A program made the translations under genes and the position numbers. From the IMG/VR virus record IMGVR_UViG_3300021057_000274, positions 62,001-126,000 of that record: a stretch of DNA of 64,000 nt. The stretch is one strand, 5' to 3'. Shown piece by piece: positions 9,472 to 61,255 of this stretch (positions within the stretch are counted from its first letter, which is position 1; every line of letters starts with the position of its first letter). Below the pieces are notes generated by a model that made no database searches, was not told the DNA's origin, and saw nothing but the letters and a program-made list of their open reading frames with translations.

Positions 9472-9545
9472 TTCTTCTGGACTACACGTCCGCAAAAGGT
9501 GTTTACTTTCTGACTGGACCGTGTTATGATGCTTCCATTGCGGCT

Positions 9546-9553
9546 TATAAATA
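9546..9553 (+). promoter_or_regulatory. T4-type late promoter TATAAATA ahead of tRNA cluster 1
   Basis: Exact TATAAATA 13 nt before tRNA; an early-type promoter also lies at ~9503-9533. Confidence 0.6.
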
Positions 9554-9565
9554 GCCTCAAGCGAT

Positions 9566-9643
9566 AGCGGAGTGGAGCAGCCCGGTAGCTCGTTGGCCTC
9601 ATAAGCCAAAGGTCGTTGGTTCGAATCCAACCTCACGCAACCA
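9566..9643 (+). tRNA. tRNA-Met(CAU), initiator-like 1:72 mismatch
   Basis: Cloverleaf, loop CTCATAA, CCA; bulge in acceptor stem. Confidence 0.8.
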
Positions 9644-9762
9644 GCTCAGCACCTTCCCCGAGGTGCAAAGCTAACTAGCGGTGGATCGCTAGCACAATCT
9701 GAAAAATCAGTCGTTTCTCCACCTAAGCACAAACGACCGTCGGACGCTGTAACCGACATTTT

Positions 9763-9836
9763 GCGGGTGTGGTACAATGGTAGCATGCAACCTTGCCAAG
9801 GTTGAGACGAGGGTTCGATTCCCTTCACCCGCTCCA
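9763..9836 (+). tRNA. tRNA-Gly(GCC)
   Basis: Cloverleaf, loop TTGCCAA, U73, CCA. Confidence 0.95.
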
Positions 9837-9899
9837 GTAGGTAGTTGTAAAAGGTCGACCGCCCACATGGGGCGGCGGATTTGAAGGTACCTACGCAGT

Positions 9900-9970
9900 G
9901 CGGGTGTAGCTCAATGGTAGAGCAACTGCCTTCCAAGCAGAAGACGGGGGTCCGATTCCCCTCACCCGCT
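9900..9970 (+). tRNA. tRNA-Gly(UCC), no genomic CCA
   Basis: Cloverleaf, loop CTTCCAA. Confidence 0.9.
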
Positions 9971-9972
9971 CC

Positions 9973-10046
9973 GAGGTTGTCGTCTAAGTGAAGACGCTGG
10001 GGCCCCAAAATCTCCAGAAACGGTGGTTCAAACCCATCCGACCTCG
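9973..10046 (+). ncRNA. tRNA-like RNA with 11-nt anticodon loop
   Basis: gaggttg/cgacctc acceptor, D and T arms; loop GCCCCAAAATC. Confidence 0.6.
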
Positions 10047-10171
10047 CCGATGCTGGAGTTCAAACGCGAAGCCGGTTTCCGGAGCTAGCTCAACCTGAAC
10101 TCGCAGCAGAAGCATCACAGGGTTGGGGGTTTCGCGGACCTCTGTGTTTCAAGAGCTTTGCTGATGCGTCT

Positions 10172-10247
10172 GGGGAAGTAGCTCAGCTGGGAGAGCGCAA
10201 CGTTCGCAACGTTGAGGTCGAGGGTTCGATCCCCTTCTTCTCCACCA
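10172..10247 (+). tRNA. tRNA-Ala(CGC)
   Basis: Cloverleaf, G3-U70, CCA. Confidence 0.95.
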
Positions 10248-10302
10248 CGTTAGTCCCGTAACTAGTACTCGGGACAGTGATCGGTGAGACTCCGATCAAG
10301 TT

Positions 10303-10378
10303 GGGGCCTTAGCTCAGCTGGGAGAGCGTATGCATGGCATGCATAAGGTCAAGGGTTCGATCCCCTTAGGCTCCACCA
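10303..10378 (+). tRNA. tRNA-Ala(GGC)
   Basis: Cloverleaf, G3-U70, loop ATGGCAT. Confidence 0.95.
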
Positions 10379-10506
10379 ATCGCGCACTGAGCGGAGACGC
10401 TTGGGGCGAAAGAGGGTTCAAAGCTGGTGCTGAGAAGTCGGGGTAAGAGCTAACGCCCAACCCGAGAACCTCAGGATGATGCTCGCTTTGATTGCGTTAG
10501 CACCAA

Positions 10507-10581
10507 GCGGAATTAGTTCAGTGGCTAGAACGAGAGCTTCCCAAGCTCAAGACGCGGGTCCGATTCCCGCATTCCGCTCCA
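10507..10581 (+). tRNA. tRNA-Gly(CCC)
   Basis: Cloverleaf, loop TTCCCAA, CCA. Confidence 0.95.
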
Positions 10582-12715: not shown

Positions 12716-12757
12716 GCCCGCGGTTTACCTCTCGCGTCTCTCATGATATAATTTCTC

Positions 12758-13708
12758 ATGAGCAATTCCTACAACCTTCAATTTCAGAAGGATCGGACCT
12801 TTCTCAAGGCCTACATGTTGGGGAGAGGATACTCCCTCGGGCTCAAGGCTCTCGGCTTCTCAGAGCGACACCACACCGGACTCAGGAAGGACAAGCAGAC
12901 CCCGGAGTTTCATCACCAGGTTCAGATCGCTCTCTCGGTTCTCGATCTCAAGGGGCTCATCAACGAGGAGCTCGCGATCGTCATCGCTCTCCTCCATGAC
13001 GTTCAGGAGGATCACCGCGTTCCGACCGAGGCGATCCGCCGCGAGTTTGGCGACGATGTCGCCTCCGTCAACTGGAAGATGACCAAGAAGTTTGTCGAGA
13101 CCGACGGCACGCTCACGGTCAAGGACAGAGAAGCTTACATCATCGATCTCTCACTTGACGCGACTGGTTCGATCGTCAAGGGGCTTGACCGAGTCAACAA
13201 TCTTCAGACGATGATCGGCGTCTTCACCGTCGAGAAGATGCAGAGCTACGCCGACGAGGCGGAGACGATCTTCCTCCCGATGCTGAAGAAGGCGTCGAAG
13301 CACTTCCCCGAACAACATCACGCGTATCAGGCCGTGCAGCAAACGATGAAGCGCCAGCTCAAGTGGATTCGCGCTTACATCGACTTGCACCAGCGCCTCG
13401 AAGCTCACATCGATCATGTCGAGATGGAGCACGAGGCAACGATCGTAGAGCGAAACGCGGCGCTAAAGACGAACGCTGATTTGCGTCACTTCACAGAAAC
13501 TCTTCAAGAGAAAAATCGAGGACTCGCAGAGATTGCCGCCAAAGGGGTGACGGAAATAAACCGCGCGCTGATTCGTGCCGTTGCTAAAGCGCTTCTCGAG
13601 AACCGCGTGACAGGTGACAAGCATGACAGCGTCTTACAGCGTCTTGCATGGCGTCATGCGCGAGCTGGGCATCTCCGAGCTCGAGATGATCCAATTTCGC
13701 GACGATAA
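12758..13708 (+). CDS. HD-domain (p)ppGpp hydrolase-like (RelA/SpoT HD) protein with coiled-coil tail
   Basis: H.G.RK...P..H, LLHDVQED, K..DRVNN; possible indel near 13645. Confidence 0.8.
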   Translation: MSNSYNLQFQKDRTFLKAYMLGRGYSLGLKALGFSERHHTGLRKDKQTPEFHHQVQIALSVLDLKGLINEELAIVIALLHDVQEDHRVPTEAIRREFGDDVASVNWKMTKKFVETDGTLTVKDREAYIIDLSLDATGSIVKGLDRVNNLQTMIGVFTVEKMQSYADEAETIFLPMLKKASKHFPEQHHAYQAVQQTMKRQLKWIRAYIDLHQRLEAHIDHVEMEHEATIVERNAALKTNADLRHFTETLQEKNRGLAEIAAKGVTEINRALIRAVAKALLENRVTGDKHDSVLQRLAWRHARAGHLRARDDPISRR

Positions 13709-17325: not shown

Positions 17326-17805
17326 GTGGCGCAAGTCTTTGACCTGAATGAGCTTCTTCACGAGGACGCGCTGCCTTGTAGCTTCGCGTATCTCGACATC
17401 GACGAGCTTCAGATGACGGTCGGGGACTTCTTCTCACGCAACTACGCTCGCGACCTGGTCAACTTCACCCCGATCGACTACCCGGGCTCGCAGCACAAGC
17501 GCGTGCTTCAAGCGTTTCTCCTGCGTCAGCCGATTCCCCGTTTCATCCTCGCCAACAATGACTCTAGCGGCGCCCTGAAGATTCTCAAGGGCCACGCGAT
17601 CATCGAGGCGATGGAGTACGTCTATCGCAATTACAAGAGCACCGACAGAGCGCTCGCCCGCCGTGTCCTGACCTCGATGATCACCTTCACGATCGTTCGT
17701 CGACACAGCGAAGCTCACAAACCCTTCGGTCGATTCGGTATCGACAACGAGACGCTCTACCTGAACTTCCTCAAGTTTCTCGACGCGTGCAACGAGTCGC
17801 GCTGA
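17326..17805 (+). CDS. hypothetical, weak DUF262/ParB-like
   Basis: LL..PIP.F.L segment; GGAGG RBS; early promoter upstream. Confidence 0.5.
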   Translation: MAQVFDLNELLHEDALPCSFAYLDIDELQMTVGDFFSRNYARDLVNFTPIDYPGSQHKRVLQAFLLRQPIPRFILANNDSSGALKILKGHAIIEAMEYVYRNYKSTDRALARRVLTSMITFTIVRRHSEAHKPFGRFGIDNETLYLNFLKFLDACNESR

Positions 17806-17987
17806 GTCTCGTCGCTCTCTGCCTCACAGGATGCGCCTCGGTCTGCCCTGAAGACACCCAGCGCCACGTCATCGCGAAGACGGTCGGCGGGCTCACCCAG
17901 TACTCGGTACCTTATGTCAGCCGAATGCCGGTACCGGTCTACGCGGAAATTCCAGTCACCGTCAGCGTCTGCCGCCCGGTCGAGTAG
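17787..17987 (+). CDS. small putative lipoprotein
   Basis: Hydrophobic N-terminus with LTGC lipobox. Confidence 0.55.
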   Translation: MQRVALSLVALCLTGCASVCPEDTQRHVIAKTVGGLTQYSVPYVSRMPVPVYAEIPVTVSVCRPVE

Positions 17988-18049
17988 TTCACAAGAACTA
18001 ACGGCAGTGTTTACAAGCTACTAGATTCCGATTACAATTACTCCAAGTT

Positions 18050-18422
18050 GCACGGAGGTCCGCAAGGCTCAAGTCGGACTAGGCAGGCCCCACAAGGGTC
18101 GAACAGCAGTTCGAGCCTCCCACGCAACCCAGTTACGAAGGTTCTCCGGGTGGACTCCGGGGAAGAGATCGCAGTATAACGCCAGACCCTGTCGGTTAAG
18201 AGCCAGGGACCAACCGGTGAGACCGTGGACGCCGAGAGGCAGAGGTCAAGTCCGGGAACCCCGCAGGGCGGACTGGGTATAGCGGCCGATCGTAACGCTC
18301 TGTGGAATTCGTTTTGGATCCGCGGCTGGTGCAGTACGCAGTTCGCCACTACGCGCTGAGGTACCGAGGTGAAGAGGCTCCAGATAGACGGCCGTCTAGC
18401 TGGAGCGGATAGGGTCCAAAAC
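18050..18422 (+). ncRNA. unassigned ~370-nt structured RNA
   Basis: TTTACA-N17-TACAAT promoter; multiple nested stems, GNRA loops; no credible ORF. Confidence 0.55.
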
Positions 18423-18532
18423 AAATTGCACAAAGTTGTTTACAAGCGAGGGAGACTGTGATACCATCGCTCTTCGAGTTGCACATGATTAACCTTTTCG
18501 GAAAATTGAGCACCGGTATAAATACCAGCACA

Positions 18533-18655
18533 ATGAGAACCTCCTTTACAAAACCAGCGCAAATTAGGACCGCCGCCGGCGAGCATCGAGAGACGATGCA
18601 GCCGTGCGTCAATCCTGATACGCGCTCCTCGATCGGAGGCGGAAGCTCAAACTAA
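18533..18655 (+). CDS. 40-aa putative leader peptide
   Basis: Follows TATAAATA 18517; overlaps antiterminator arm. Confidence 0.5.
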   Translation: MRTSFTKPAQIRTAAGEHRETMQPCVNPDTRSSIGGGSSN

Positions 18656-18718
18656 CGAGATCTTCCGCTAAGGCAGCACCCGGTCGAGGGGTCCAGAGAT
18701 GGACCCCTCATTCGTTTT
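18625..18718 (+). promoter_or_regulatory. attenuator (antiterminator/terminator pair) upstream of main tRNA array
   Basis: 18625-36 pairs 12 bp with 18680-91, which overlaps terminator stem 18686-94/18701-09 plus U-rich tail. Confidence 0.65.
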
Positions 18719-18748
18719 GGAGTCAAGCGGTTGAAGTTGTAGCACGAT

Positions 18749-18824
18749 GCGCCTGTAGCTCAGTGGAGAGAGTGCCGCGCTACGAACGCGGAGGTCGGGG
18801 GTTCGATCCCCTCCAGGCGTGCCA
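18749..18824 (+). tRNA. tRNA-Arg(ACG)
   Basis: Cloverleaf, CCA. Confidence 0.95.
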
Positions 18825-19028
18825 GAGGTTAAGTCGATGACCTCGATGTAACACCTAGAAGTCGACAACGCCGGTGAATCAGGGCGTGGGGAACCAAGTA
18901 CTGGTTGGATGCTGAAATGAAGCCGCGGTTTTACCCTTAAGCGCGGTGGATGACTGAGAAAGGGCGCTGTAGCCGGTCTAGCATGGGTGTCGAAGTCGAC
19001 TCCCCCTCGATCGGAGCGGTGACAAGAT

Positions 19029-19100
19029 ACGCCCGCCGATGGATTTTCGGCGCCAGGTCTTCTAAACCAGGATAGGAGGGTTCGATTCCTTCCGGGCGTG
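19029..19100 (+). tRNA. tRNA-Arg(UCU), no genomic CCA
   Basis: Loop CTTCTAA; A-A mismatch in anticodon stem. Confidence 0.75.
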
Positions 19101-19103
19101 CCT

Positions 19104-19177
19104 TCCCACATAGCTCAATGGTAGAGCCGCTGGTTGTGAACCAGATTGCCCGGGTCCGATTCCCGGTGTGGGACCCA
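19104..19177 (+). tRNA. tRNA-His(GUG)
   Basis: Loop TTGTGAA, C73, CCA. Confidence 0.9.
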
Positions 19178-19193
19178 GTAGTTGCAGTTCAAT

Positions 19194-19286
19194 TCCTCGG
19201 TACTCTAACGGTAAGAGACCTGGCTGTTAACCAGACGTATCCCGCCACCGAGCGGTATGGAGGTTCGAGTCCTCCCTGAGGAGCCA
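19194..19286 (+). tRNA. tRNA-Asn(GUU) with long variable region
   Basis: Loop CTGTTAA, G73, ~23-nt variable region. Confidence 0.85.
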
Positions 19287-19289
19287 AAT

Positions 19290-19364
19290 GGGTGCGTAGC
19301 TCAGTGGTAGAGCGGGAACCTGTTAAGTTCCGGGTCGAAGGTTTGATTCCTTCCGTGCCCTCCA
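19290..19364 (+). tRNA. tRNA-Asn(GUU)
   Basis: Loop CTGTTAA, CCA. Confidence 0.85.
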
Positions 19365-19375
19365 CAATTCAGTAA

Positions 19376-19441
19376 CCGGGAAGTCCTAGTGACGTATTGC
19401 CGCGGCTGCCATCGTTGGCACGTAGGCTAGGACTTCCCGGT
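19376..19441. repeat. 15-bp perfect inverted repeat hairpin
   Basis: accgggaagtcctag/ctaggacttcccggt. Confidence 0.8.
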
Positions 19442-19455
19442 AGAAGTACAACATT

Positions 19456-19530
19456 GGCTCATTGATGAATGGGTTATCATACTACCCTGTCACGGTAGGT
19501 TAGCGGGTTCGAGTCCCGCATGGGTCGCCA
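19456..19530 (+). tRNA. tRNA-Asp(GUC)
   Basis: Loop CTGTCAC, G73, CCA. Confidence 0.95.
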
Positions 19531-19534
19531 AAAT

Positions 19535-19615
19535 GCGCTTCGGGAGGTTGAATCTCAACAGGTCGGGTCGCTCCCGTCTGTAAAACATGGGTTAAATTCC
19601 TGTGGAAGCGCGCCA
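19535..19615 (+). ncRNA. tRNA-like RNA with non-canonical core
   Basis: gcgcttc/gaagcgc-G-CCA, degenerate T arm, no normal anticodon arm. Confidence 0.55.
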
Positions 19616-19660
19616 AAATTAGAGGCTGACGATTCTGGGCGGCAATCTAGAGTCGGCGGT

Positions 19661-19767
19661 TTGTCGTTGAGGGTGGCTCCTCAGGACCCCGAGTAGGACG
19701 GTGAGATCTTGCCGGATCGAGCCGTTTGAAACGGGTCCTGTCGGTGGTTCGATTCCACCACGACTTC
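19661..19767 (+). ncRNA. tRNA-like RNA with expanded anticodon arm
   Basis: gtcgt/acgac, D-like hairpin, ggaccc/gggtcc enclosing ~45 nt, canonical T arm. Confidence 0.5.
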
Positions 19768-19954
19768 ACTCTAACCCTCTTCATGAAGCTGTGGGTAGAT
19801 CACCCTGCCACAAATCGGGTGATGAGGTCCGATCGCCTTCGTCCGTGGCATGCATGGCGCCAGGGCGATACCCCAGCAGTAACTGCGGCCGTCACCGAAC
19901 TTTATGCGAGAAAGTTCAGCGGTGACGAGGAGGAGGCGAACTGCTCGTTCAGTT

Positions 19955-20029
19955 GTCCCATTCGTCTAGTGGCTAGGACACAACCCTTTCAAGGTTGAGA
20001 ACGGGGATCGAAACCCCGATGGGACACCA
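19955..20029 (+). tRNA. tRNA-Glu(UUC)
   Basis: Loop CTTTCAA, CCA. Confidence 0.95.
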
Positions 20030-20033
20030 CTAT

Positions 20034-20109
20034 CTGGGTGTAGGTCAGCGGCGAGACTGCCTGGTCCGGAGCCAGGAGGCCGTGGGTTCGAGTCCCACCA
20101 CCCAGACCA
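20034..20109 (+). tRNA. tRNA-Pro(CGG), C33
   Basis: C1-G72, A73; loop TCCGGAG. Confidence 0.9.
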
Positions 20110-20149
20110 AAGCGGCCCCCAGCGCCGCTCTAAGCCGAGGCTGGGGCAT

Positions 20150-20225
20150 CGGAGAGTCGCCTAGCGGCTATGGCGCCTGCTTTGGGAGCAGGATACCGTG
20201 GGTTCGAGTCCCACCTTTCCGACCA
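20150..20225 (+). tRNA. tRNA-Pro(UGG)
   Basis: Loop TTTGGGA, CCA. Confidence 0.95.
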
Positions 20226-20235
20226 ACACATCAAT

Positions 20236-20310
20236 CGCTTCTTGGCGGCAAGCTGCCGTGCTCCCACTAGAAGGGAGAGCGAGGAGGTTCACGCCCTCCA
20301 GGAGCGACCA
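20236..20310 (+). tRNA. atypical tRNA, UAG anticodon (Leu-like) without long arm
   Basis: Full cloverleaf plus CCA; loop ACTAGAA; D loop lacks GG; T loop TTCACGC. Confidence 0.55.
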
Positions 20311-20311
20311 C

Positions 20312-20385
20312 GGGTCCGTAGTTCAATGGTAGAATGTTACCTCGACACGGTAGAGACGAAGGTTCGATTCCTTCTGGACCCACCA
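20312..20385 (+). tRNA. tRNA-Val(GAC), C33
   Basis: Loop TCGACAC, CCA. Confidence 0.9.
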
Positions 20386-20391
20386 AAATTT

Positions 20392-20465
20392 GGGCTACAA
20401 GCTTTAAGGTGAAGCATCTGGCTCTTACCCAGAAGAACGGGGATCATTACCCCGGTAGCCCACCA
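20392..20465 (+). tRNA. tRNA-Lys(CUU)
   Basis: Loop CTCTTAC, CCA. Confidence 0.9.
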
Positions 20466-20468
20466 GCA

Positions 20469-20617
20469 TTCGGTAGTGACCTAACGTTCAGGACGAAAGG
20501 AATCGTGCGGTCGCCCTAGTACCAGCTCTGGGTGACTAAACGGAGTCGAGTAGGCCTGCTCGCAAAAGGGATCGGTCAGGGACTGGTACTCCAGAGGTTC
20601 GACTCCTCCTACCGGAC
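20469..20617 (+). ncRNA. 149-nt tRNA-like RNA with expanded D and anticodon arms
   Basis: ttcggtag/ctaccgga, agtaccag/ctggtact, GG-TTCGACT-CC T arm. Confidence 0.55.
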
Positions 20618-20625
20618 TAAACTAG

Positions 20626-20702
20626 GGTTCTTTAGCTCAGATGCGTAGAGCGCCGAGCTTACACCTCGGATGTCGGGGGTTCAAGTCCCTCAGGAACCAC
20701 CA
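20626..20702 (+). tRNA. tRNA-Val(UAC)
   Basis: Loop CTTACAC, CCA. Confidence 0.95.
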
Positions 20703-20704
20703 AT

Positions 20705-20780
20705 GGCGATGTGGTGAACTGGCTATCACGCGGCTCTCATAAGGCTGAGTAGACGGGATCGAAACCCTCCATCGCTACCA
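20705..20780 (+). tRNA. tRNA-Met or Ile2 (CAU)
   Basis: Loop CTCATAA, CCA; identity not resolvable by eye. Confidence 0.9.
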
Positions 20781-20881
20781 TTCTAGGAAGTTGGGACTGC
20801 TCAAGCGGACGGAGTCCGGTAGCCCTCGCGGGGAGACCAATGAGTTGTGGTTCGATTCAACGCCTAGCTTTTATTGCGCTT

Positions 20882-20956
20882 CCCTCATTCGTCTAATGGT
20901 CAGGGCCCGTGCTTGATAGGCGCGTGACGGTGGTTCGATTCCATCATGAGGGACCA
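20882..20956 (+). tRNA. tRNA-Ile(GAU)
   Basis: Loop TTGATAG, CCA. Confidence 0.9.
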
Positions 20957-21046
20957 ACAGCAGCCGAGAAGCAGGCCCGTCGGTCGGTTAGAGAGCCTTC
21001 CGCACGTGCGCTCCGTGAAGCCACGGCAAACGGACTGCTGCATTAT

Positions 21047-21121
21047 CAGGGTGTAGCTCAGTGGGAGAGTGCTACGTCGGGAACGTAGAGGCCGCAGGTT
21101 CAATCCCTGCCACCCTGACCA
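21047..21121 (+). tRNA. tRNA-Pro(GGG), C33
   Basis: C1-G72, A73; loop TCGGGAA. Confidence 0.9.
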
Positions 21122-21224
21122 ATAGCTGGCTTGCAAGTGACGAGAGGTCATCATGCTTCGGAGCGCACGCTGGGGATAAGCTCCCAGCGCAGCGACCTAG
21201 ACGGCAAGCTGGCGGGCCTTATTT

Positions 21225-21295
21225 CAGAGCGTAGCGTAGTGGTAGCGTACCTGGCCTGGAACCAGGAGGTGTTGGTTCGATTCCAGCCGCTCTGA
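21225..21295 (+). tRNA. tRNA-Pro(UGG), C33, no genomic CCA
   Basis: C1-G72, A73; loop CCTGGAA. Confidence 0.85.
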
Positions 21296-21297
21296 CC

Positions 21298-21385
21298 GGG
21301 GGAAGATGTAGGTTCGAATCCTATCCAATGGCCATAAGCCCGTGAGGGTGGCTGGCAGGTAGCTCAACCGGCAGAGCAGCTCCCC
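21298..21385 (+). ncRNA. circularly permuted tRNA-like RNA (T arm before D arm; YrlA-like topology)
   Basis: GTAGG-TTCGAAT-CCTAT precedes TAGCTC-AACCGGCA-GAGC; ends gggga/tcccc pair. Confidence 0.6.
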
Positions 21386-21391
21386 TTTCTG

Positions 21392-21467
21392 GTACATTAG
21401 CTCATGGGGTTAGAGCGCGCGCCCGATAAGCGCGGGGTGGAAGGTTCGAGTCCTTCATGTACCACCA
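21392..21467 (+). tRNA. tRNA-Ile(GAU), C33
   Basis: Loop CCGATAA, CCA. Confidence 0.9.
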
Positions 21468-21600
21468 GACAACACCGTTGCTTCTCACCGAGAGAAGCCA
21501 GCTAGCAAGCGAAGCAGACATTCGTCTAGATCACTGCGACTGGACCCGGAATCCCTCGCGTGGTGGCCGATTGTCGGCTAGGACGGATTCGTTGTCTACT

Positions 21601-21673
21601 GGGGGATGTAGCCGGGGCACAGGAACGCCTTGCAAGCGATCCGCGATGGGTTCAACTCCCATATCCTCCACCA
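21601..21673 (+). tRNA. tRNA-Ala(UGC), atypical D and anticodon stems
   Basis: G3-U70, loop CTTGCAA, CCA. Confidence 0.75.
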
Positions 21674-21774
21674 GATCTTTAGCTCAAACGGGTAAGAGCG
21701 GCGGGACAGATAACCCGCGTCAAGGTGAGCTACGGCGAGCCGAGTGCGGCGACCCCATGCCGTAAGATCTACCA
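21673..21774 (+). ncRNA. tRNA-like RNA with 8-nt anticodon loop and replaced T arm
   Basis: agatctt/aagatct-A-CCA, canonical D arm, gcggg-ACAGATAA-cccgc, tacggc/gccgta arm. Confidence 0.6.
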
Positions 21775-21778
21775 AACT

Positions 21779-21849
21779 GGGCTGTTAGTTTAGCGGGAAA
21801 ACACTGCGCTTGCACCGCGGAATCCGGGGTTCGACTCCCCGACGGTCCA
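21779..21849 (+). tRNA. tRNA-Ala(UGC), no genomic CCA
   Basis: G3-U70, loop CTTGCAC. Confidence 0.9.
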
Positions 21850-21863
21850 CCCACAGATAGGAG

Positions 21864-22052
21864 ATGATCATGTTACCGATCGACGAAGCTGTCAAGCTCA
21901 CCGACATGGATGAGCTGGGTCGTGAGGAGTGGGAGCGTCTCTTCATCTCGACGAACCCGATGTGGAACGTCAGCCCGACCGAGGTCATGAGCGAGGTCAG
22001 AAGGTTGGGTGAACGTCGTAAGGAGCTCCTCAAGGGAGTTCGCTGGTTCTAA
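21864..22052 (+). CDS. small hypothetical protein inside tRNA array
   Basis: AGGAG RBS, 62 aa. Confidence 0.65.
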   Translation: MIMLPIDEAVKLTDMDELGREEWERLFISTNPMWNVSPTEVMSEVRRLGERRKELLKGVRWF

Positions 22053-22057
22053 GCTGT

Positions 22058-22131
22058 TGGGGATTGGTGAAATGGTATCATGTGAGATTCTGACTCTCAA
22101 GTCGTAGGTTCGATTCCTACATCCCCTGCCA
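22058..22131 (+). tRNA. tRNA-Gln(CUG)
   Basis: Loop TTCTGAC, G73, CCA. Confidence 0.95.
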
Positions 22132-22180
22132 CACAACGTCCCTCCACGCCTCTCAACGATGCGCACCCAGGAGGGCCTCT

Positions 22181-22253
22181 GTGCCTCAGACCAATCTGGT
22201 GATGGACCGAGCCTGAAAGCCTCGGAAGCTCGGTTCGATTCCGAGGGGGCACA
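22181..22253 (+). tRNA. tRNA-Phe(GAA), no genomic CCA
   Basis: Loop CTGAAAG; C31-C39 mismatch. Confidence 0.8.
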
Positions 22254-22255
22254 CC

Positions 22256-22348
22256 GGTAGGTGGCGCTGGCGCGCGGCTGGGCCTTATAGACCCGGGAGA
22301 CTGGCCGGACTGGCTGGAACGGCGAGGGTTCGAATCCCCGACCTACCA
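22256..22348 (+). tRNA. tRNA with UAU anticodon (Ile-type) and long variable arm
   Basis: ggtaggt/acctacc-A; loop CTTATAG; ~25-nt variable region. Confidence 0.65.
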
Positions 22349-22453
22349 CCTGTAAGAATCTCCCGAGGTTTGACCCGAGGAGTCGTTAGAGAAGATGATA
22401 TCTCGCTGGCGACGGCCAGAGAACCCCGGGGATGACAGACTCCCGGGACGATT

Positions 22454-22529
22454 GGCCCTTAAGCTAATCAGGTGAAAGCGCCGGTCTGAAAAGCCGGAGA
22501 GTCTGGTTCGATACCAGAAGGGGCCACCA
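22454..22529 (+). tRNA. tRNA-Phe(GAA)
   Basis: Loop CTGAAAA, CCA. Confidence 0.95.
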
Positions 22530-22547
22530 ATACAGGAGGATCGCCAA

Positions 22548-22634
22548 ATGTTCAAAGCTTGGTGGGACAATGGGGCAACGAGAGGCTTTGGGATGCGCTT
22601 ATTCCGGAGCTGGCTTTGTGGTGATTGCTGCTAG
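22548..22634 (+). CDS. 28-aa Trp/Cys-rich peptide
   Basis: AGGAGG RBS; MFKAWWDNGATRGFGMRLFRSWLCGDCC. Confidence 0.45.
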   Translation: MFKAWWDNGATRGFGMRLFRSWLCGDCC

Positions 22635-22653
22635 AGCGATTCCGGACAGACAG

Positions 22654-22731
22654 ATGACATGGAGCTGGTACTTCTTTCTCGGATTTCGCGTACGTGGAAA
22701 GCACTTAATTGATTTTCGCTGGACGAAGTAG
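22654..22731 (+). CDS. 25-aa aromatic-rich peptide
   Basis: MTWSWYFFLGFRVRGKHLIDFRWTK; weak RBS. Confidence 0.35.
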   Translation: MTWSWYFFLGFRVRGKHLIDFRWTK

Positions 22732-22737
22732 ATCTGT

Positions 22738-22810
22738 TGGGGTGAGGATTGGCATCTACGGATGGCTTTGAACCATCTCGGACACGGTTCGATTCCGTGC
22801 GCCCCTGCCA
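22738..22810 (+). tRNA. tRNA-Gln(UUG)
   Basis: Loop CTTTGAA, G73, CCA. Confidence 0.85.
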
Positions 22811-22966
22811 AGGTTGATGGAATGATCATCGACGCCTAGAAGAGCGTGCACGCTTCCTCCAGAGCGGCTAGACGTGAGGAGGATTTTGGATGAAGGGCTA
22901 TCCTCGTTCGATTCGAGGCGTCCTGAACGAAACGGCGCCGAGTCGGTGGAAGCCCGGCGCCTGCAT

Positions 22967-23038
22967 GTCCCGTTGGATTTCCGGGTAGATCGCTGGGACT
23001 TCACCCCAGAGAGACGGGTTCAACTCCCGTACGGGACG
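22967..23038 (+). tRNA. tRNA-Glu(UUC), C33, no genomic CCA
   Basis: Loop ACTTCAC, G73. Confidence 0.85.
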
Positions 23039-23045
23039 CCCCCAC

Positions 23046-23134
23046 GGGGCGCGACGCTGAAGACACCGCCGCGGGCTCAACGCTAGGCCACCGCGGTAAG
23101 ACTTCGGGGCGGACGGTTTCCGCGCGCTCCACCA
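23046..23134 (+). ncRNA. Ala-acceptor tRNA-like RNA resembling a tmRNA TLD with no mRNA domain
   Basis: ggggcgc/gcgctcc with G3-U70, A73, CCA; stemless D region; accgc/gcggt arm. Confidence 0.55.
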
Positions 23135-23151
23135 AATGATACAATAGCTAG

Positions 23152-23907
23152 ATGCTCTACGTAGGAACCAGCGGCTTCCAGTACAAGCACTGGAACGACG
23201 GCGTGTTCTACCCGTCTGGCGTCAAGGATCGCTTGGCGTTTCTCAGCCAACGGATGAACGCTCTCGAGATCAACGCGTCGTTCTACAGCATTCCAAAACC
23301 GGGGAGCGTGCGGCGCTGGAGCGAGAAGCTTCCGCAGAACTTCAAGCTAACGCTCAAGGCTCCTCGGTCGGTCACGCACCGACGTCGCCTCAAGCTGCGG
23401 AGCGACCCGACGATCAAGCAAGGCTGGGACCTCCTCCGCTACTTCTCGGAGGGCGTTCTTCAGATCGCTCCGCAGCAGCGAGGACCTGTTCTCGTGCAGT
23501 TGGAGCACAGATTTAAGATCGATCTCGACCGCTTAGAGGCCGTGCTGGAGTTCTTCAGAGTTCTCCAGCTGACCGTTGCGCTCGAGGTAAGGTGTACCTC
23601 CTGGCTTCGGATGGAGACGCTCAGGCTGCTTCGAGAGTATCGAGGCGCGTTGGTCTCCGCGGATTGGAGGGAGTGCACGGTGCCGATCTACGACACGGGA
23701 AGCTTCGTGTACGTGCGCCGCCACGGGTCGCTCGGACGATACTTCGGGTCATACTCGAGGGCCAAGCTCCAGGCTGATCTCGACGCGGTAGCGCCGTACC
23801 TAGAGCAAGGGCGCGACGTCTACGTCTTCTTCAACAATGACGGCGGCGGCGCGGCCCCGAGGAACGCAGTAAGCATGCTTAAGTTAGCAGATGTCCGATT
23901 CGTCTAG
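23152..23907 (+). CDS. DUF72 (YecE-like) family protein
   Basis: YVGTSGFQY.HW..FYP, EINASFY, KAP..TH, FFNN. Confidence 0.9.
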   Translation: MLYVGTSGFQYKHWNDGVFYPSGVKDRLAFLSQRMNALEINASFYSIPKPGSVRRWSEKLPQNFKLTLKAPRSVTHRRRLKLRSDPTIKQGWDLLRYFSEGVLQIAPQQRGPVLVQLEHRFKIDLDRLEAVLEFFRVLQLTVALEVRCTSWLRMETLRLLREYRGALVSADWRECTVPIYDTGSFVYVRRHGSLGRYFGSYSRAKLQADLDAVAPYLEQGRDVYVFFNNDGGGAAPRNAVSMLKLADVRFV

Positions 23908-23967
23908 TGGTAAGGACGCTAGCCCCTCAAGCTGGAAACCCGGGTTCGATTCCCGGCTCGGACGCCA
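23893..23967 (+). tRNA. tRNA-Glu(CUC), C33
   Basis: Loop CCCTCAA, CCA; overlaps DUF72 stop. Confidence 0.9.
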
Positions 23968-23968
23968 C

Positions 23969-24042
23969 GCGGATTTGGTCTAATGGTATGACGTGAGATC
24001 GCCAGTCTCAAAGCGCGGGTTCGATTCCCGCAATCCGCTCCA
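23969..24042 (+). tRNA. tRNA-Gly(GCC), C33
   Basis: Loop TCGCCAG, U73, CCA. Confidence 0.9.
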
Positions 24043-24117
24043 ACGTTGGTCGCGCGCTTGACCGTTCCGCGAGATAAGAGAGGAGGTCTCTAAAATGAGA
24101 TCCGCCAACGTTTCAAT

Positions 24118-24192
24118 GGTACCCATGGTGTAATGGAAGCACTTCTCCCTGTGAAGGAGGTAGCACCGGATCGATACCGGTTGGGTACCCCA
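24118..24192 (+). tRNA. tRNA-His(GUG) with G-1
   Basis: G-1:C73, loop CTGTGAA, CCA. Confidence 0.95.
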
Positions 24193-24195
24193 TAA

Positions 24196-24270
24196 CTCGC
24201 TGTGGTGAAACGGACATCACGATCCTCTCCTAAAGGGTAAGTCCAGGTTCAATTCCTGGCAGCGAGGCCA
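24196..24270 (+). tRNA. tRNA-Arg(CCU)
   Basis: Loop CTCCTAA, CCA. Confidence 0.95.
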
Positions 24271-24271
24271 T

Positions 24272-24346
24272 CTCCGGTCCAGTGGCATTCTGGCACAGCG
24301 GCTACGAACCGCAGTTGCGGGAGTTCGATTCTCTCACCGGGGTCCA
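24272..24346 (+). tRNA. tRNA-Arg(ACG)
   Basis: Loop CTACGAA, CCA. Confidence 0.8.
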
Positions 24347-24353
24347 AACACAT

Positions 24354-24427
24354 GTCGGTGTGGTCCAATGGCAGGGCGATTGGCTGCAACCCAATAGACG
24401 GGGGTTCGATTCCCTTCACCGACTCCA
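24354..24427 (+). tRNA. tRNA-Cys(GCA)
   Basis: Loop CTGCAAC, U73, CCA. Confidence 0.95.
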
Positions 24428-24630
24428 AAGAAAAAGCGGCGCCCGATGAGTTGGGCGCCGCTGGAGGACCGGCCCTTCGCAGGGAGGGGAGGAGGGGCCG
24501 GTTGGACGAATTTCAATGTATCACTCTCTCCCGAGAAAGTAAACAGATTCTTGCAAGAAGAAAGCACTTCGACCTCAGCCTGGCCGGGCGGTCGAAAAGT
24601 TGGGGTAAGAGCCCTCATGGCTAGGCGCAG

Positions 24631-24704
24631 GCCCGGTTCGTACAGTGGTAGTACGCCTGTTTCGTAAACAGGATGCGGGGGTCCGATTCCCTCACTGGGC
24701 ACCA
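24631..24704 (+). tRNA. tRNA-Thr(CGU)
   Basis: Loop TTCGTAA, CCA. Confidence 0.95.
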
Positions 24705-24705
24705 T

Positions 24706-24780
24706 CTCGCTGTAGTGAAGTGGACATCACGGTCTCCTCCGAAGGGACAAGCCCAGGTTCGATTCCTGGCAGCGGGGCCA
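24706..24780 (+). tRNA. tRNA-Arg(CCG)
   Basis: Loop CTCCGAA, CCA; body nearly identical to Arg(CCU). Confidence 0.95.
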
Positions 24781-24798
24781 AGCTACATAAATAGCCTC

Positions 24799-25125
24799 AT
24801 GAAGCTCTCAGACCTCTTCGAGACCAAGTCCAACTTTTACGTGAAGCTGTGGGGGAAGGTGAACGACGTCCAGATCGACGGCGTCTCCGACCTCGAGGAC
24901 CTCCACGAGAAGATCGGCACAGGCGCTTCGAATCCGATCAAGAAGAAGATTGAGGCGGCGTTCGCCGAGCTGGTCAACGCTAAAGGCGACCACTACGCCG
25001 CCGAGATTCAAGAGGTGATCTGGGAGCACAATGACGAGTTCTTCGGCGTTGACCTCTACGTCAGCACTCCAGACCTTGACGGTGAAGCTCCCCGCACGGT
25101 GCGCGGCGAAGTTCACCAGTCGTGA
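24799..25125 (+). CDS. hypothetical, putative virion internal protein
   Basis: TAAATA 24788; MKLSDLFE. Confidence 0.75.
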   Translation: MKLSDLFETKSNFYVKLWGKVNDVQIDGVSDLEDLHEKIGTGASNPIKKKIEAAFAELVNAKGDHYAAEIQEVIWEHNDEFFGVDLYVSTPDLDGEAPRTVRGEVHQS

Positions 25126-25454
25126 GACTCAACGAGATCTTCTCCTACGAGGACGACGAGGAGCGTCGCATTCAAGCTCGTCGCAAGCGCGACACGTACG
25201 GTGCTCCACTACATCCCAGCAAGGCCAACACCTTCGTCGCCAAGTTGCTCGACAAGCATGACGGCAACCCGAAGGCGGCACTCGCTGAGCTCGTCGACGA
25301 GATCGACGACTACCAGCGGAGCCGCGGCAAGAACGGCCCGATGATGACGCTCTACACCGCGATGCACCAGATGCTCTTGGACTACGTCAAGAACCCAAGC
25401 GCCTTTCAGCGGTTCATGCAAAAGGTTGTCAAGACTCCGCCCGATAAACTTTGA
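25122..25454 (+). CDS. hypothetical, putative virion internal protein
   Basis: GTGA coupling; MRLNEIF. Confidence 0.7.
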   Translation: MRLNEIFSYEDDEERRIQARRKRDTYGAPLHPSKANTFVAKLLDKHDGNPKAALAELVDEIDDYQRSRGKNGPMMTLYTAMHQMLLDYVKNPSAFQRFMQKVVKTPPDKL

Positions 25455-25513
25455 CGGTGAAGCCTTCTCTTGTAAAGAAGCGGAAGTCGGTTCGAATCCG
25501 GCATCGGGCACCA
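25439..25513 (+). tRNA. tRNA-Thr(UGU)
   Basis: Loop CTTGTAA, CCA; overlaps upstream CDS end. Confidence 0.9.
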
Positions 25514-25524
25514 AACTCAACAAC

Positions 25525-25598
25525 GCTCTTGTAGTCCATTGGTAAGATGCATCCTTGGTAAGGATGAGAACAGGGTTCGATTCCCTGCTGGAGCACCA
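25525..25598 (+). tRNA. tRNA-Thr(GGU)
   Basis: Loop TTGGTAA, CCA. Confidence 0.9.
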
Positions 25599-25969: not shown

Positions 25970-26675
25970 GGGAGAGTGGTGTTAACGGTTGAGCACAGCG
26001 GACTTATTCATGAGCTTGATGCGCTATGTAAAATAGACGTCATGCTCATGTGTCAGCACTGCAATAGATCCACATCGCAACGTCAAGCGCTCATCATGCA
26101 TGAGCGGTCGTGTAAGCAGAATCCTAATAGAGTGCCCGGGAAGAATTCCTGGTCCAATCCAACCTACAAAATGTCGGAAGAGACTAGGCAGAAGCTTCGT
26201 GAGAGCACGATCCGAAGAAATCGAAGCATGTCTCTAGAGTGCGCAGGAAGATCTCTGAGGGGCGGATCAGGTATCTGCGTGACCATCCTGAGATGGTGCC
26301 ATACAAACTCAATCATAAATCTAAGGGTAGATCTTTCCCGGAGAGATACTGGGGAGAGCTCCTGAAGAAATACGGTCTAGAGTTCGTCGAGCAGTTTCAG
26401 GAATCTACCTACACGCTTGACTTCGCATTCCTTGATCGCAAGATCGACCTCGAGATTGACGGAGAACAACACTACGTCGATCCTAGGATTGTTTCCTCTG
26501 ATCAGCGCCGAAATGCTTTTCTTGAGGGACGAGGATGGAAGATTGTTCGAGTGCGCTGGTCTAAGTACCAGCAGCTTTCTGGAGATGATCGCGAAAAGTT
26601 CGTCACGAATCTCGTTGAAAGCCTGACGACAGGTTAATCCGACAGGTCTCGGTTCGAATCCGAGTTCTCCTACCA
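25970..26675 (+). tRNA. tRNA-Lys(UUU) split by 628-nt insert (exons 25970-26005, 26634-26675)
   Basis: Joined exons give gggagag/ttctcct-A-CCA and cgga-CTT|TTAA-tccg. Confidence 0.8.
26042..26637 (+). CDS. EDxHD/DUF559 homing endonuclease with Zn finger and NUMOD3-like repeats; one -1 frameshift near 26239
   Basis: CQHC..HERSC; SEETRQKL; ER..LDF..LEIDGEQH..DQRRN..GWK.VR. Confidence 0.8.
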
Positions 26676-26749
26676 CGTAATTGTGTGTGTTCTTTTGAGT
26701 GATTTTGAGATATAATGTCTCATATTCAACGGTCCTGGAGGCGGGAAAC

Positions 26750-28034: not shown

Positions 28035-28108
28035 GCCTCTGTACGTCAATGGCAGACCACCGCTCCCACACAGCGGGAACTCTGGTTCGATTCCAGACAG
28101 AGGCACCA
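28035..28108 (+). tRNA. tRNA-Val(CAC), C33
   Basis: Loop CCCACAC, CCA. Confidence 0.9.
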
Positions 28109-28140
28109 GTCTCACCTGCCACGTGTAGGAGGAGCATCGG

Positions 28141-28174
28141 AGGGCCTTAGGCAGAGATGCCTAGGGCCCTTTGT
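28141..28174 (+). terminator. intrinsic terminator-like hairpin
   Basis: agggccttaggca/tgcctagggccct plus TTGT. Confidence 0.55.
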
Positions 28175-56928: not shown

Positions 56929-58035
56929 GTGGACCCCAAGATCTATCTGGTAGGCGGCGCTGTACGAGACCACGTGCTGGGAGTTCTCAGCAAGGATCGT
57001 GACTACGTCGTCGTCGGGGCCACTCCCGAGTGGATGATTGAGCGCGGCTTCAAGCGGGTGGGAGCCGACTTCCCGGTTTTCTTGCACCCTGAGACCAGGT
57101 ACGAGTACGCCCTGGCGCGGCAAGAGCGCAAGACCGGCCCAGGCTATCACGGCTTCGACACTCGGTTCGACCCCAGCATCACGCTGGAGGACGATCTGCG
57201 TCGTCGTGACTTGACGATCAACGCGATGGCGATGACCGACGAGGGTGAGATCATCGACCCGTTCGGCGGCTTGACCGACCTGAAAGCTGGCGTGTTGCGT
57301 CACACCAGCGAGGCCTTCGCCGAGGATCCGTTGCGCGTCTTGCGCGTCGCTCGCTTCGCCGCTCGCTATGATTTCACGATCGACCAGACCACCGTCGAGC
57401 TGGCGCGGAAGATCGTCGCTTCAGGCGAGCTGAACTCCCTGCCGCGCGAGCGCTTCTGGACCGAGCTGTGGAAGGGTTTCAACGAGAAGCATCCCTCCAA
57501 GATGATCTCCGCTCTGGAGAACATGAACGCGATTGCGACGGCACCGCTGAACCAGTACTTCGGCAGAAATTTCTCTCTGGACGTCACCGTCGAGAAGATG
57601 AAAGCCGCCGAAAAGAAGTCACTCCCGGCGATCGCCGTTGCAGCTCTGACCCTGGGGCCGATAGACGCCGACAAAGCGAACGAGCTGCGGGTGCCCTCAG
57701 ACGTGTACCGCGTTCATGTCTGGGCCAATAAGCTGGCGATGCTGCACACCCATGACACGGCTGAGAAGATGATCAAGTTCATGGGAAGCATCAAGTATGA
57801 CATCACCAACCCCGACTACTATGCGGCGCTGAGAACTAGCGAGCTGATCGCGTCGCTGATGCTGGACGATCGCAACTTTTCTCGGTGGCACGAGATGAGC
57901 GGCCGAATGGTCATGGTCGACGCCGAGCTGAAGAAGACCAACTTCAAGGAGGTCGCCGAGAACGGGCCGAAGGCGACCATCAGGGAGCGGATTAACGCCG
58001 CTCGCTTAGCCGCGGCCCGGAGAGCTTTCAGCTAA
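56929..58035 (+). CDS. cca: tRNA nucleotidyltransferase (CCA-adding enzyme, class II, no HD domain)
   Basis: [36 protein letters not shown]. Confidence 0.95.
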
Positions 58036-61180: not shown

Positions 61181-61255
61181 GCTCCCTTAGCTCAGCGGCA
61201 GAGTACGGGACTCTAAATCCTAGGGTCGTGGGTTCGAATCCCACAGGGAGCACCA
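61181..61255 (+). tRNA. amber-suppressor tRNA (anticodon CUA)
   Basis: Cloverleaf, loop CTCTAAA, A73, CCA; own TGATATAAT promoter. Confidence 0.88.

Follow-up and report, generated by a model that had tools for sequence, protein, structure and literature searches.

Attenuators and phage tRNA clusters described so far

Amino-acid operons of Proteobacteria (trp, his, leu, pheA, thr, and ilvGMEDA) are controlled by attenuators with three features. A short ORF near the promoter carries the regulatory codons, an intrinsic terminator precedes the first structural gene, and an alternative helix can form between the 3' part of the ORF and the 5' arm of the terminator. The phage locus described here shows all three at the level of sequence. 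A single thr or ilv leader senses several amino acids, and the phage device would likewise be multivalent. It differs from the amino-acid operon attenuators in that it regulates tRNAs rather than enzymes. No single codon is repeated in the phage ORFs, which instead sample 10–27 anticodons and at most 17 amino acids. The phage mRNA is apparently leaderless and has no clear 1:2 partner, and the device probably responds to the supply of tRNAs and not of amino acids.

The pheST operon of E. coli, with its pheM leader, is also a case in which leader-peptide attenuation governs a component of the translation apparatus. Its target, however, is an aminoacyl-tRNA synthetase and its sensor a run of Phe codons; neither tRNA genes nor the sampling of many codons are involved. 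T-box riboswitches also report the state of the tRNA pool through an antiterminator/terminator switch, but each T-box recognises a single uncharged tRNA by direct contact with a specifier codon and a conserved T-box sequence, has no ORF, and targets synthetase or amino-acid genes, unlike the phage tRNA arrays. In erm/cat-type leader peptides and in the pyrBI attenuator, which senses ribosome-polymerase coupling, the position of the ribosome on the leader ORF likewise sets the RNA fold. These systems respond to drug-stalled ribosomes or UTP-dependent polymerase pausing, not to the decoding of chosen codons.

The T4 tRNA cluster is also phage-encoded, transcribed as a unit, and processed, and it shares with the present phage the TATAAATA promoter motif and a T4-type portal protein. 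T4 late transcription uses TATAAATA. The T4 cluster is not known to have a leader ORF or attenuator, and none was found in the full-text literature searched. That literature also gave no report of a leader-peptide attenuator of tRNA genes or of phage tRNA arrays, and tRNA operons go unmentioned in a survey of premature terminators. The mechanism belongs to a known class; what is new is the kind of gene regulated, the design of a sampler for many codons, and the occurrence in a phage.

The phage genome and its tRNA arrays

The window, which is the whole stretch of 64,000 nucleotides that was analysed, corresponds to bases 62001–126000 of a 389,331-bp IMG/VR virus record (soil; 57.8% G+C). The phage encodes a T4-type portal protein (Pfam Portal_T4, E = 7e-93), a tail sheath, a family-B DNA polymerase, and a ribonucleotide reductase, and because these genes are present it is regarded as a T4-related jumbo phage. 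Its nearest named relatives, XacN1, Xoo-sp13, and SCTP-2, are about 25% identical in one protein only. ARAGORN finds 41 tRNAs in the window. The tRNA features of the phage are as follows (window positions unless stated).

9570–10581: array 1, Met, Gly x3, Ala x2 (ARAGORN)
18749–25598, + strand: array 2, the genes proposed to be regulated, 33 tRNAs (default ARAGORN), with tRNA-Val(cac) in addition at 28035–28108
18749 (start): tRNA-Arg(acg), the first tRNA of array 2
28138–28173, + strand: strong terminator closing the array-2 unit, 16-bp stem, 30 nt past the last tRNA
61181–61255: tRNA with a CUA anticodon
372777–374811 of the genome, outside the window: array 3, Leu x4, Tyr, Trp x2, Ser x4 at the relaxed ARAGORN threshold

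Several other elements were observed in and around the arrays. The CUA-anticodon tRNA is of the amber suppressor type (labelled 'Pyl' by ARAGORN), and the relative G001, described below, also encodes one (reverse-complement coordinate 82495). A tRNA nucleotidyltransferase (window 56929–58035, + strand), a PrkA-type kinase (genome 353245–355170), and a 1022-aa RCC1-repeat protein (genome 202845–205913) are phage-encoded. Array 2 contains a DUF72 (YecE-like) gene at 23152–23907 (+ strand). Its best homologues are from Oxalobacteraceae bacteria (about 57% identity) and none are from phages, which gives a hint of the host group. The Rfam abiF RNA motif lies in array 2 between tRNA-Gln and tRNA-Phe (22140–22176, + strand; 48 bits against a gathering score of 37). 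At 25971–26676, relaxed ARAGORN reports a tRNA-Lys(ttt) with a 628-nt insert that holds two overlapping ORFs of about 130 aa; it could possibly be an intron-containing tRNA, which would supply the missing AAA reader. A tRNA-like element at 19028–19100, with a canonical T arm, reaches 28 bits against the tRNA-Sec model, and T-arm-like sequences occur in array-2 spacers, for example at 21303–21323, 22327–22350, and 26651–26675.

Putative promoters and start of the array-2 leader

The region immediately upstream of array 2 contains the following parts, all on the + strand; the upstream region of array 1 is included for comparison.

18438–18467, + strand: sigma-70-like promoter (GTTTAC, 17 nt, TG-n-TACCAT), a possible second, upstream promoter of the leader
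18517–18524, + strand: TATAAATA, a T4-late-type promoter motif, with the ATG of the leader ORF 8 nt downstream
18533–18655, + strand: leader ORF, 40 codons plus TAA (ATG at 18533, TAA at 18653–18655), peptide MRTSFTKPAQIRTAAGEHRETMQPCVNPDTRSSIGGGSSN
18556–18626, + strand: P1, a long irregular hairpin within the ORF, found in the MFE and centroid folds and abutting segment 2
18625–18636, + strand: segment 2, the 5' strand of the antiterminator, ORF codons 31–35
18639–18668, + strand: inner hairpin within the 2:3 helix, whose loop holds the stop codon
18680–18691, + strand: segment 3, the 3' strand of the antiterminator, whose last 6 nt are the start of the terminator 5' arm
18686–18719, + strand: predicted attenuator terminator, 10-bp stem (7 G-C pairs), GAGA loop, tail AUUCGUUUUG (terminator scan)
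9501–9553, + strand: upstream of array 1, GTTTAC...TATGAT followed by TATAAATA at 9546–9553, with tRNA-Met from 9570

A preliminary description of this locus had listed the TATAAATA motif, a 40-codon ORF, a terminator, and the first tRNA. All of these parts are present, and the span given for the ORF was correct.

The genome has seven + strand copies of TATAAATA and a single - strand copy, an enrichment with a strand bias; the expectation of about 1.5 copies per strand from base composition is our own estimate. One copy is located 16 nt upstream of array 1. In G001, the strands carry 19 and 2 copies, of which 6 lie within 260 nt upstream of tRNA genes, and the motif stands 11–18 nt upstream of three tRNAs. 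The tentative T4-late-type reading of TATAAATA rests on this strand bias, on its position before tRNAs and genes in two phages, and on the presence of a T4-type portal. The pattern GTTTAC-N16-18-TAnnnT has 32 matches in the genome, 28 of them on the + strand, and promoters of this type are also found upstream of arrays 1 and 3. Array 1 has both promoter motifs upstream, yet 9501–9553 contains no ORF and no hairpin.

The gap of 8 nt between TATAAATA and the ATG at 18533 would make a nearly leaderless mRNA; this is an inference, without 5' end or translation data. At 8–9 of the 32 promoters, a start codon follows the -10 element by 5–8 nt and opens an ORF of 54–316 aa, which suggests that leaderless starts are normal in this phage. 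One of these genes is an HD-domain gene at 12758 with a Pfam match. The leader ORFs of arrays 2 and 3 lack a Shine-Dalgarno sequence, and both start at the distance seen in the leaderless genes of the phage. Further in-frame starts exist upstream of the array-2 leader ORF (ATG at 18485 and GTG at 18458). The longer ORFs were considered less likely, as they add two Leu codons and GTG 18458 lies within the sigma-70-like promoter.

The phage promoter family GTTTACttt ... TGaTAcAAT is strong, sigma-70-like, and genome-wide (for example, window 12723–12760). A second member at 18009–18038 is followed by about 390 nt (18045–18437) without a convincing gene, and the structure of this ORF-poor stretch is ordinary (z = 0.16). 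The 12-mer ATTCGTTTTGGA that directly follows the attenuator hairpin (18710) recurs at 18307.

Codon content of the array-2 leader ORF

At this G+C content, an open frame of 40 codons would not be remarkable; the significance of this one lies in its codon content. The amino acids of the leader ORF are exactly the 17 that have a tRNA in array 2, and Leu, Trp, and Tyr are absent. In a null set of 3689 ATG-started, stop-free 40-codon windows taken from six frames of the whole genome, only one window has all 17 amino acids and no Leu, Trp, or Tyr, namely the leader ORF itself. The ORF uses 32 distinct codons, a number reached by 26 of the 3689 windows. It contains a cognate codon for 23 of the 27 array-2 anticodons, which alone is a modest statistic (72/3689).

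The match extends to isoacceptors. Thr is encoded by ACC, ACA, and ACG, and the tRNA-Thr genes of array 2 have anticodons ggt, tgt, and cgt. Pro is encoded by CCA, CCG, and CCT (tRNA-Pro tgg, cgg, and ggg), and Gln by CAA and CAG (tRNA-Gln ttg and ctg). Arg likewise appears in different codons that match array-2 isoacceptors. The match is imperfect in that the leader ORF has five Ser codons, yet most Ser tRNAs belong to array 3, and in that its AAA (Lys) codon lacks a clear cognate tRNA in array 2. A possible 75-nt tRNA(tag) at 20237–20311 (relaxed ARAGORN) is not sampled by the ORF. The codon and composition statistics were framed after the pattern had been seen, and the other units were examined afterwards with the same kind of measure.

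Predicted alternative RNA structures of the array-2 leader

The array-2 leader is unusually structured in comparison with shuffled sequences (z = -5.85). The terminator hairpin is made of GAGGGGTCCA (18686–18695), the GAGA loop, and TGGACCCCTC (18700–18709), and is followed by ATTCGTTTTG; its U-tract (AUUCGUUUUG) is interrupted. It is predicted, by sequence only, to be an intrinsic terminator 30 nt upstream of tRNA-Arg. On the + strand of the whole genome, just two terminator-like hairpins stand 90 nt or less upstream of a tRNA, and they belong to arrays 2 and 3.

The preliminary description had also proposed a 12-bp pairing between 18625–18636, inside the ORF, and 18680–18691 that excludes the terminator. 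This part held. The helix has 12–13 bp including two G-U pairs, overlaps the terminator 5' arm by 6 nt, and is stronger than chance. The duplex of segment 2 with 18680–18695 has an energy of -24.6 kcal/mol. Shuffling the upstream leader with its dinucleotides preserved gives -17.5 +/- 2.3 kcal/mol, and the observed value is reached in 20 of 3000 shuffles. No significant upstream partner was found for the array-2 terminator 5' arm alone. The 2:3 helix appears in the MFE of the nascent RNA once 18691 has been transcribed, and is the default nascent fold of the array-2 leader. In full-length folds, the form with the terminator has -85.4 kcal/mol against -81.3 kcal/mol for the full antiterminator, a margin of only about 4 kcal/mol. 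A hairpin with the stop codon in its loop inside the 2:3 helix is shared by the array-2 leader, leader A of G001, and the G002 leader.

A third element of the preliminary description, an upstream atcgag (18584) that can sequester segment 2, was not supported: in every predicted fold, 18582–18598 forms its own small hairpin inside 18556–18626. P1 is a possible pause or anti-antiterminator element that would be melted by the translating ribosome, a role that is inferred. A convincing 1:2 anti-antiterminator was not found in the array-2 leader, and it follows that this leader, when untranslated, may read through by default.

RNA data for the phage are very thin. The single RNA library that contains it yields five short contigs at a depth of 2–4. 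Of these, four map shortly after the hairpin and the leader has none; DNA carry-over is not excluded. Those within array 2 are at 18826–19090, 19507–19932, and 20088–20222. The library is too thin, and kept as contigs, to show termination. The 265-nt contig at 18826–19090 starts exactly past tRNA-Arg and fills the spacer up to the tRNA-like element, and may possibly reflect a processed stable RNA or an odd tRNA.

A second leader unit before array 3

The same phage contains a second unit with the layout of array 2, in which a promoter, an ORF, and a hairpin precede tRNA-Leu (genome 372565–372776). The promoter is of the GTTTAC...TAnnnT family, and the ATG follows the -10 element by 8 nt. The ORF has 21 codons (MTNVLSLSLSWSLSSYLGERP) with the core LSLSLSWSLSSYL. 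The 10-bp hairpin consists of CTAGGGCCTC, a caagt loop, and GAGGCCCTAG, with the tail TCGTTTTT (also given as UCGUUUUU), and tRNA-Leu begins 44 nt past its stem. The stop codon of this ORF is TAG, and the frame beyond it is open through the terminator.

The gaps of array 3 are occupied, at the relaxed ARAGORN threshold, by four long-arm tRNA-Ser genes, three of which look convincing. These candidates (positions 1055–2262 of locus L003; genome 373054–374261) have non-canonical T loops and were missed by Rfam and default ARAGORN.

The ORF core is a run of 13 residues made only of Leu, Ser, Trp, and Tyr. No other run of this kind is as long among the 778,658 six-frame codon positions searched in the 389-kb genome, and the runner-up has 9 residues. 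The codons of the ORF cover 10 of the 10 array anticodons, as do only 2 of 5327 null windows, the other being an antisense frame. The end of the ORF is an exact 10-nt copy of the terminator 3' arm and forms a perfect 10-bp antiterminator, whose duplex energy with the terminator 5' arm alone is reached by none of 3000 shuffles. In the MFE fold of this leader, a clear 1:2 hairpin covers the antiterminator strand. No Rfam family was found for the leaders at the array-2 and array-3 loci. The window has no match to the T-box model (RF00230) at the gathering threshold, nor do 17700–19200, with E up to 5 allowed, or the array-3 locus.

Leader units in related phages

Two distant relatives, with portal proteins 65% and 45% identical, hold three more leader units.

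G001: 360,227 bp, terminal repeats, 46.9% G+C, portal 65% identical, found via the portal protein
G001 leader C (class-II array): TATAAATA, ATG 5 nt on, ORF MNTFNISLLSSSLLSYSLYSELRGVGLKVDM (core SLLSSSLLSYSLYS), 13-bp hairpin, tRNA-Leu
G001 leader A: TATAAATA, 44-codon ORF MFTNFPQPSVKWHQQPTQTFIRKNNEVEIRDD..., 11-bp hairpin, then 27 tRNAs
G002 leader (portal 45% identical): ATAATAAATA, ORF MKSFVRNSNSNSNPVNNPVVASRPSNSTIALRGLTKM (MKSFVRNSNSNSNPVNNPVVASRPSNS...), 11-bp hairpin, Pro-Asn-Pro-Asn-Ser array

Leader C of G001 precedes Leu/Tyr/.../Ser tRNAs, and its 14-residue run of Leu, Ser, and Tyr is the longest in the G001 genome. Leader A precedes an array of 27 tRNAs for Glu, Phe, His, Gln, Lys, Asn, Ile, Asp, Trp, Pro, Thr, and Val, and all 12 of these amino acids, Trp included, are present in its ORF. 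tRNA-Trp belongs to this 27-tRNA array in G001 and to array 3 in the present phage, and the Trp codon shifts along with it. Ala, Gly, Cys, Leu, and Tyr, for which G001 has its tRNAs at other places, are missing from residues 1–32 of leader A. This composition was matched in only 1 of 4823 windows. In the G002 ORF, Pro, Asn, and Ser make up 17 of 36 residues, which is equalled by 1 of 4290 windows of G001 and 12 of 3890 windows of the present phage. The antiterminator duplexes of the two G001 leaders have energies reached by 7 and 24 of 2000 shuffles, and that of G002 by 28 of 2000. The antiterminator is statistically supported in all five units of the three phages. The arrays of G001 are also closed by strong terminators, after Val(tac) and after Leu(taa).

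The composition of the leader ORF tracks its own array in all five units. When leaders were scored against arrays, the true pairing ranked 1 of 120 permutations, with a summed -log10 P of 19.1. Neither nucleotide nor peptide sequence is conserved between homologous leaders, while their architecture and composition are kept. These findings suggest that selection acts on the codons and the structure and not on the peptide. Covariation in relatives had been named beforehand as a check, but the nucleotide alignment of the leaders was too poor for column-wise counts.

The device is not universal. It is absent from array 1, from several arrays of the relatives, from G004 (portal 40% identical), and from XacN1. 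The latter is a published 385-kb phage with 60 Rfam tRNA matches and about 24% identity in one protein; its tRNAs are interleaved with small genes, and its upstream motif differs. A third G001 array (Ala, Pro, Arg, Gly; reverse-complement 349895–350180, locus L041) has the same TTTTCCA-N7-TATAAATA promoter but no attenuator. In place of one there is a long hairpin, together with a hydrophobic 51-aa ORF that has a ribosome-binding site and ends just upstream of the first tRNA.

Further searches did not extend the set. No relatives were found in viral contigs through three neighbouring proteins, and the exact terminator sequence had no viral-contig match. The leader-adjacent protein has no homologue among 5.8 billion proteins except itself, on a contig identical to the window. 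In metagenomes, a degenerate class-II leader pattern recovered no contigs beyond the two source contigs, and GTDB genomes gave no match. The G001 promoter pattern matched 39 viral contigs, and tRNAs lay downstream only at the three loci of G001 itself.

Proposed mechanism

A ribosome-mediated transcription attenuator probably gates the phage tRNA array, with the leader ORF acting as a codon sampler. The evidence is computational only, without transcript-end or translation data. The analysis shows the parts and their order, a statistical excess of the alternative pairing, a match in codons, and the presence of five such units in three phages. The promoter and start site, translation of the ORF, termination, the sign of the response, and the behaviour of the untranslated RNA are inferred. 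Attenuation of the trp type with a sampler ORF is, by inference, the most economical reading.

Transcription would start at TATAAATA, and perhaps also at the upstream sigma-70-like promoter, and the 40-codon ORF would be translated from a nearly leaderless AUG. When all codons are decoded fast, the ribosome would keep pace with RNA polymerase and cover segment 2 and the stop-codon hairpin. With segment 2 masked, the 2:3 helix would not form, the hairpin at 18686–18709 would fold, and transcription would stop about 30 nt before the first tRNA. When any sampled codon is slow, the ribosome would lag, and segment 2 would pair with 18680–18691, removing 6 nt of the terminator 5' arm. The disrupted terminator would let polymerase enter the array, and more tRNA would be made, which amounts to a negative feedback on decoding capacity.

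The preliminary description had inferred that the progress of the ribosome on the leader sets transcription of the array through the competing 2:3 and 3:4 helices. Computation supports this claim through the match between ORF and array, the second unit in the phage, the three units in relatives, and the rank of 1 in 120 permutations, while termination and its dependence on translation remain inferred.

Alternative explanations

The leader could be a self-contained small RNA or micropeptide gene that happens to precede the array. The hairpin would then be its ordinary terminator, the tRNAs would come from constitutive leak-through or another start, and the codon match would be a coincidence or by-product. 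The leader is indeed compact, highly structured, and about 185 nt long, with a terminator at its end, and it has no RNA contig in the thin library. Phage tRNA clusters are known to co-encode small stable RNAs, such as species 1 and 2 of T4. However, the 39 nt between hairpin and tRNA are too short for a promoter, five units in three phages retain an array-specific composition match despite drift of peptide and nucleotide sequence, and an alternative pairing competes with the terminator in all five. This explanation is considered very unlikely. Control of timing is also a very unlikely alternative. It holds that the hairpin stops early transcripts of the host polymerase, that a phage late or antitermination factor reads through, and that the array is a plain late gene set to which the ORF is irrelevant. 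The tandem sigma-70-like and TATAAATA promoters upstream of arrays 1 and 2 and the T4-type core genes of the phage speak for it. Against it, the codon content of five ORFs and the antiterminators that use the 3' end of the ORF are left unexplained, and since TATAAATA lies upstream of the array-2 hairpin, late transcripts meet this hairpin too.

A T-box-like element with multiple specifiers would need no translation, as free tRNAs would bind the codon triplets through their anticodons and thereby stabilise one of the folds. The triplets are cognate to the array tRNAs and an antiterminator/terminator switch is present, as in T-boxes. On the other side, the leaders match no T-box or other Rfam family at any threshold used, the triplets stand in a single frame whose ATG is positioned as in the leaderless genes of the phage, the stop codon has a consistent position relative to the 2:3 helix, and many codons are buried in stems. 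There is very little probability that this explanation is correct.

Significance for large phages

How large phages control near-complete tRNA sets, and why they carry them, is an open question. An array-matched leader ORF makes for a concrete claim, that phage tRNA supply is set by feedback from decoding speed. Ribosome-mediated attenuation by a sampler ORF would take leader-peptide attenuation beyond amino-acid operons to tRNA genes, beyond one or a few amino acids to as many as 17, and beyond bacteria to phages. If it works as proposed, the leader would be a natural, compact sensor of translational capacity and a potential reporter, and it would tie to the arms race over tRNA-cleaving defence systems.

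A bolder reading can be hypothesized, in which a clade of T4-related jumbo phages gauges the decoding of the cell codon by codon and turns on the matching block of tRNAs. It is tentative, and the present evidence leaves it less likely than not. If it were true, there would be one sampler ORF per array, and loss of host tRNAs, which could stem from host shut-off, starvation, or anticodon-nuclease defence systems, would be sensed for each isoacceptor group and answered by making replacement tRNAs. The leader would then be the first attenuator known for tRNA genes and would provide these phages with a built-in counter-measure to tRNA-targeting defence.
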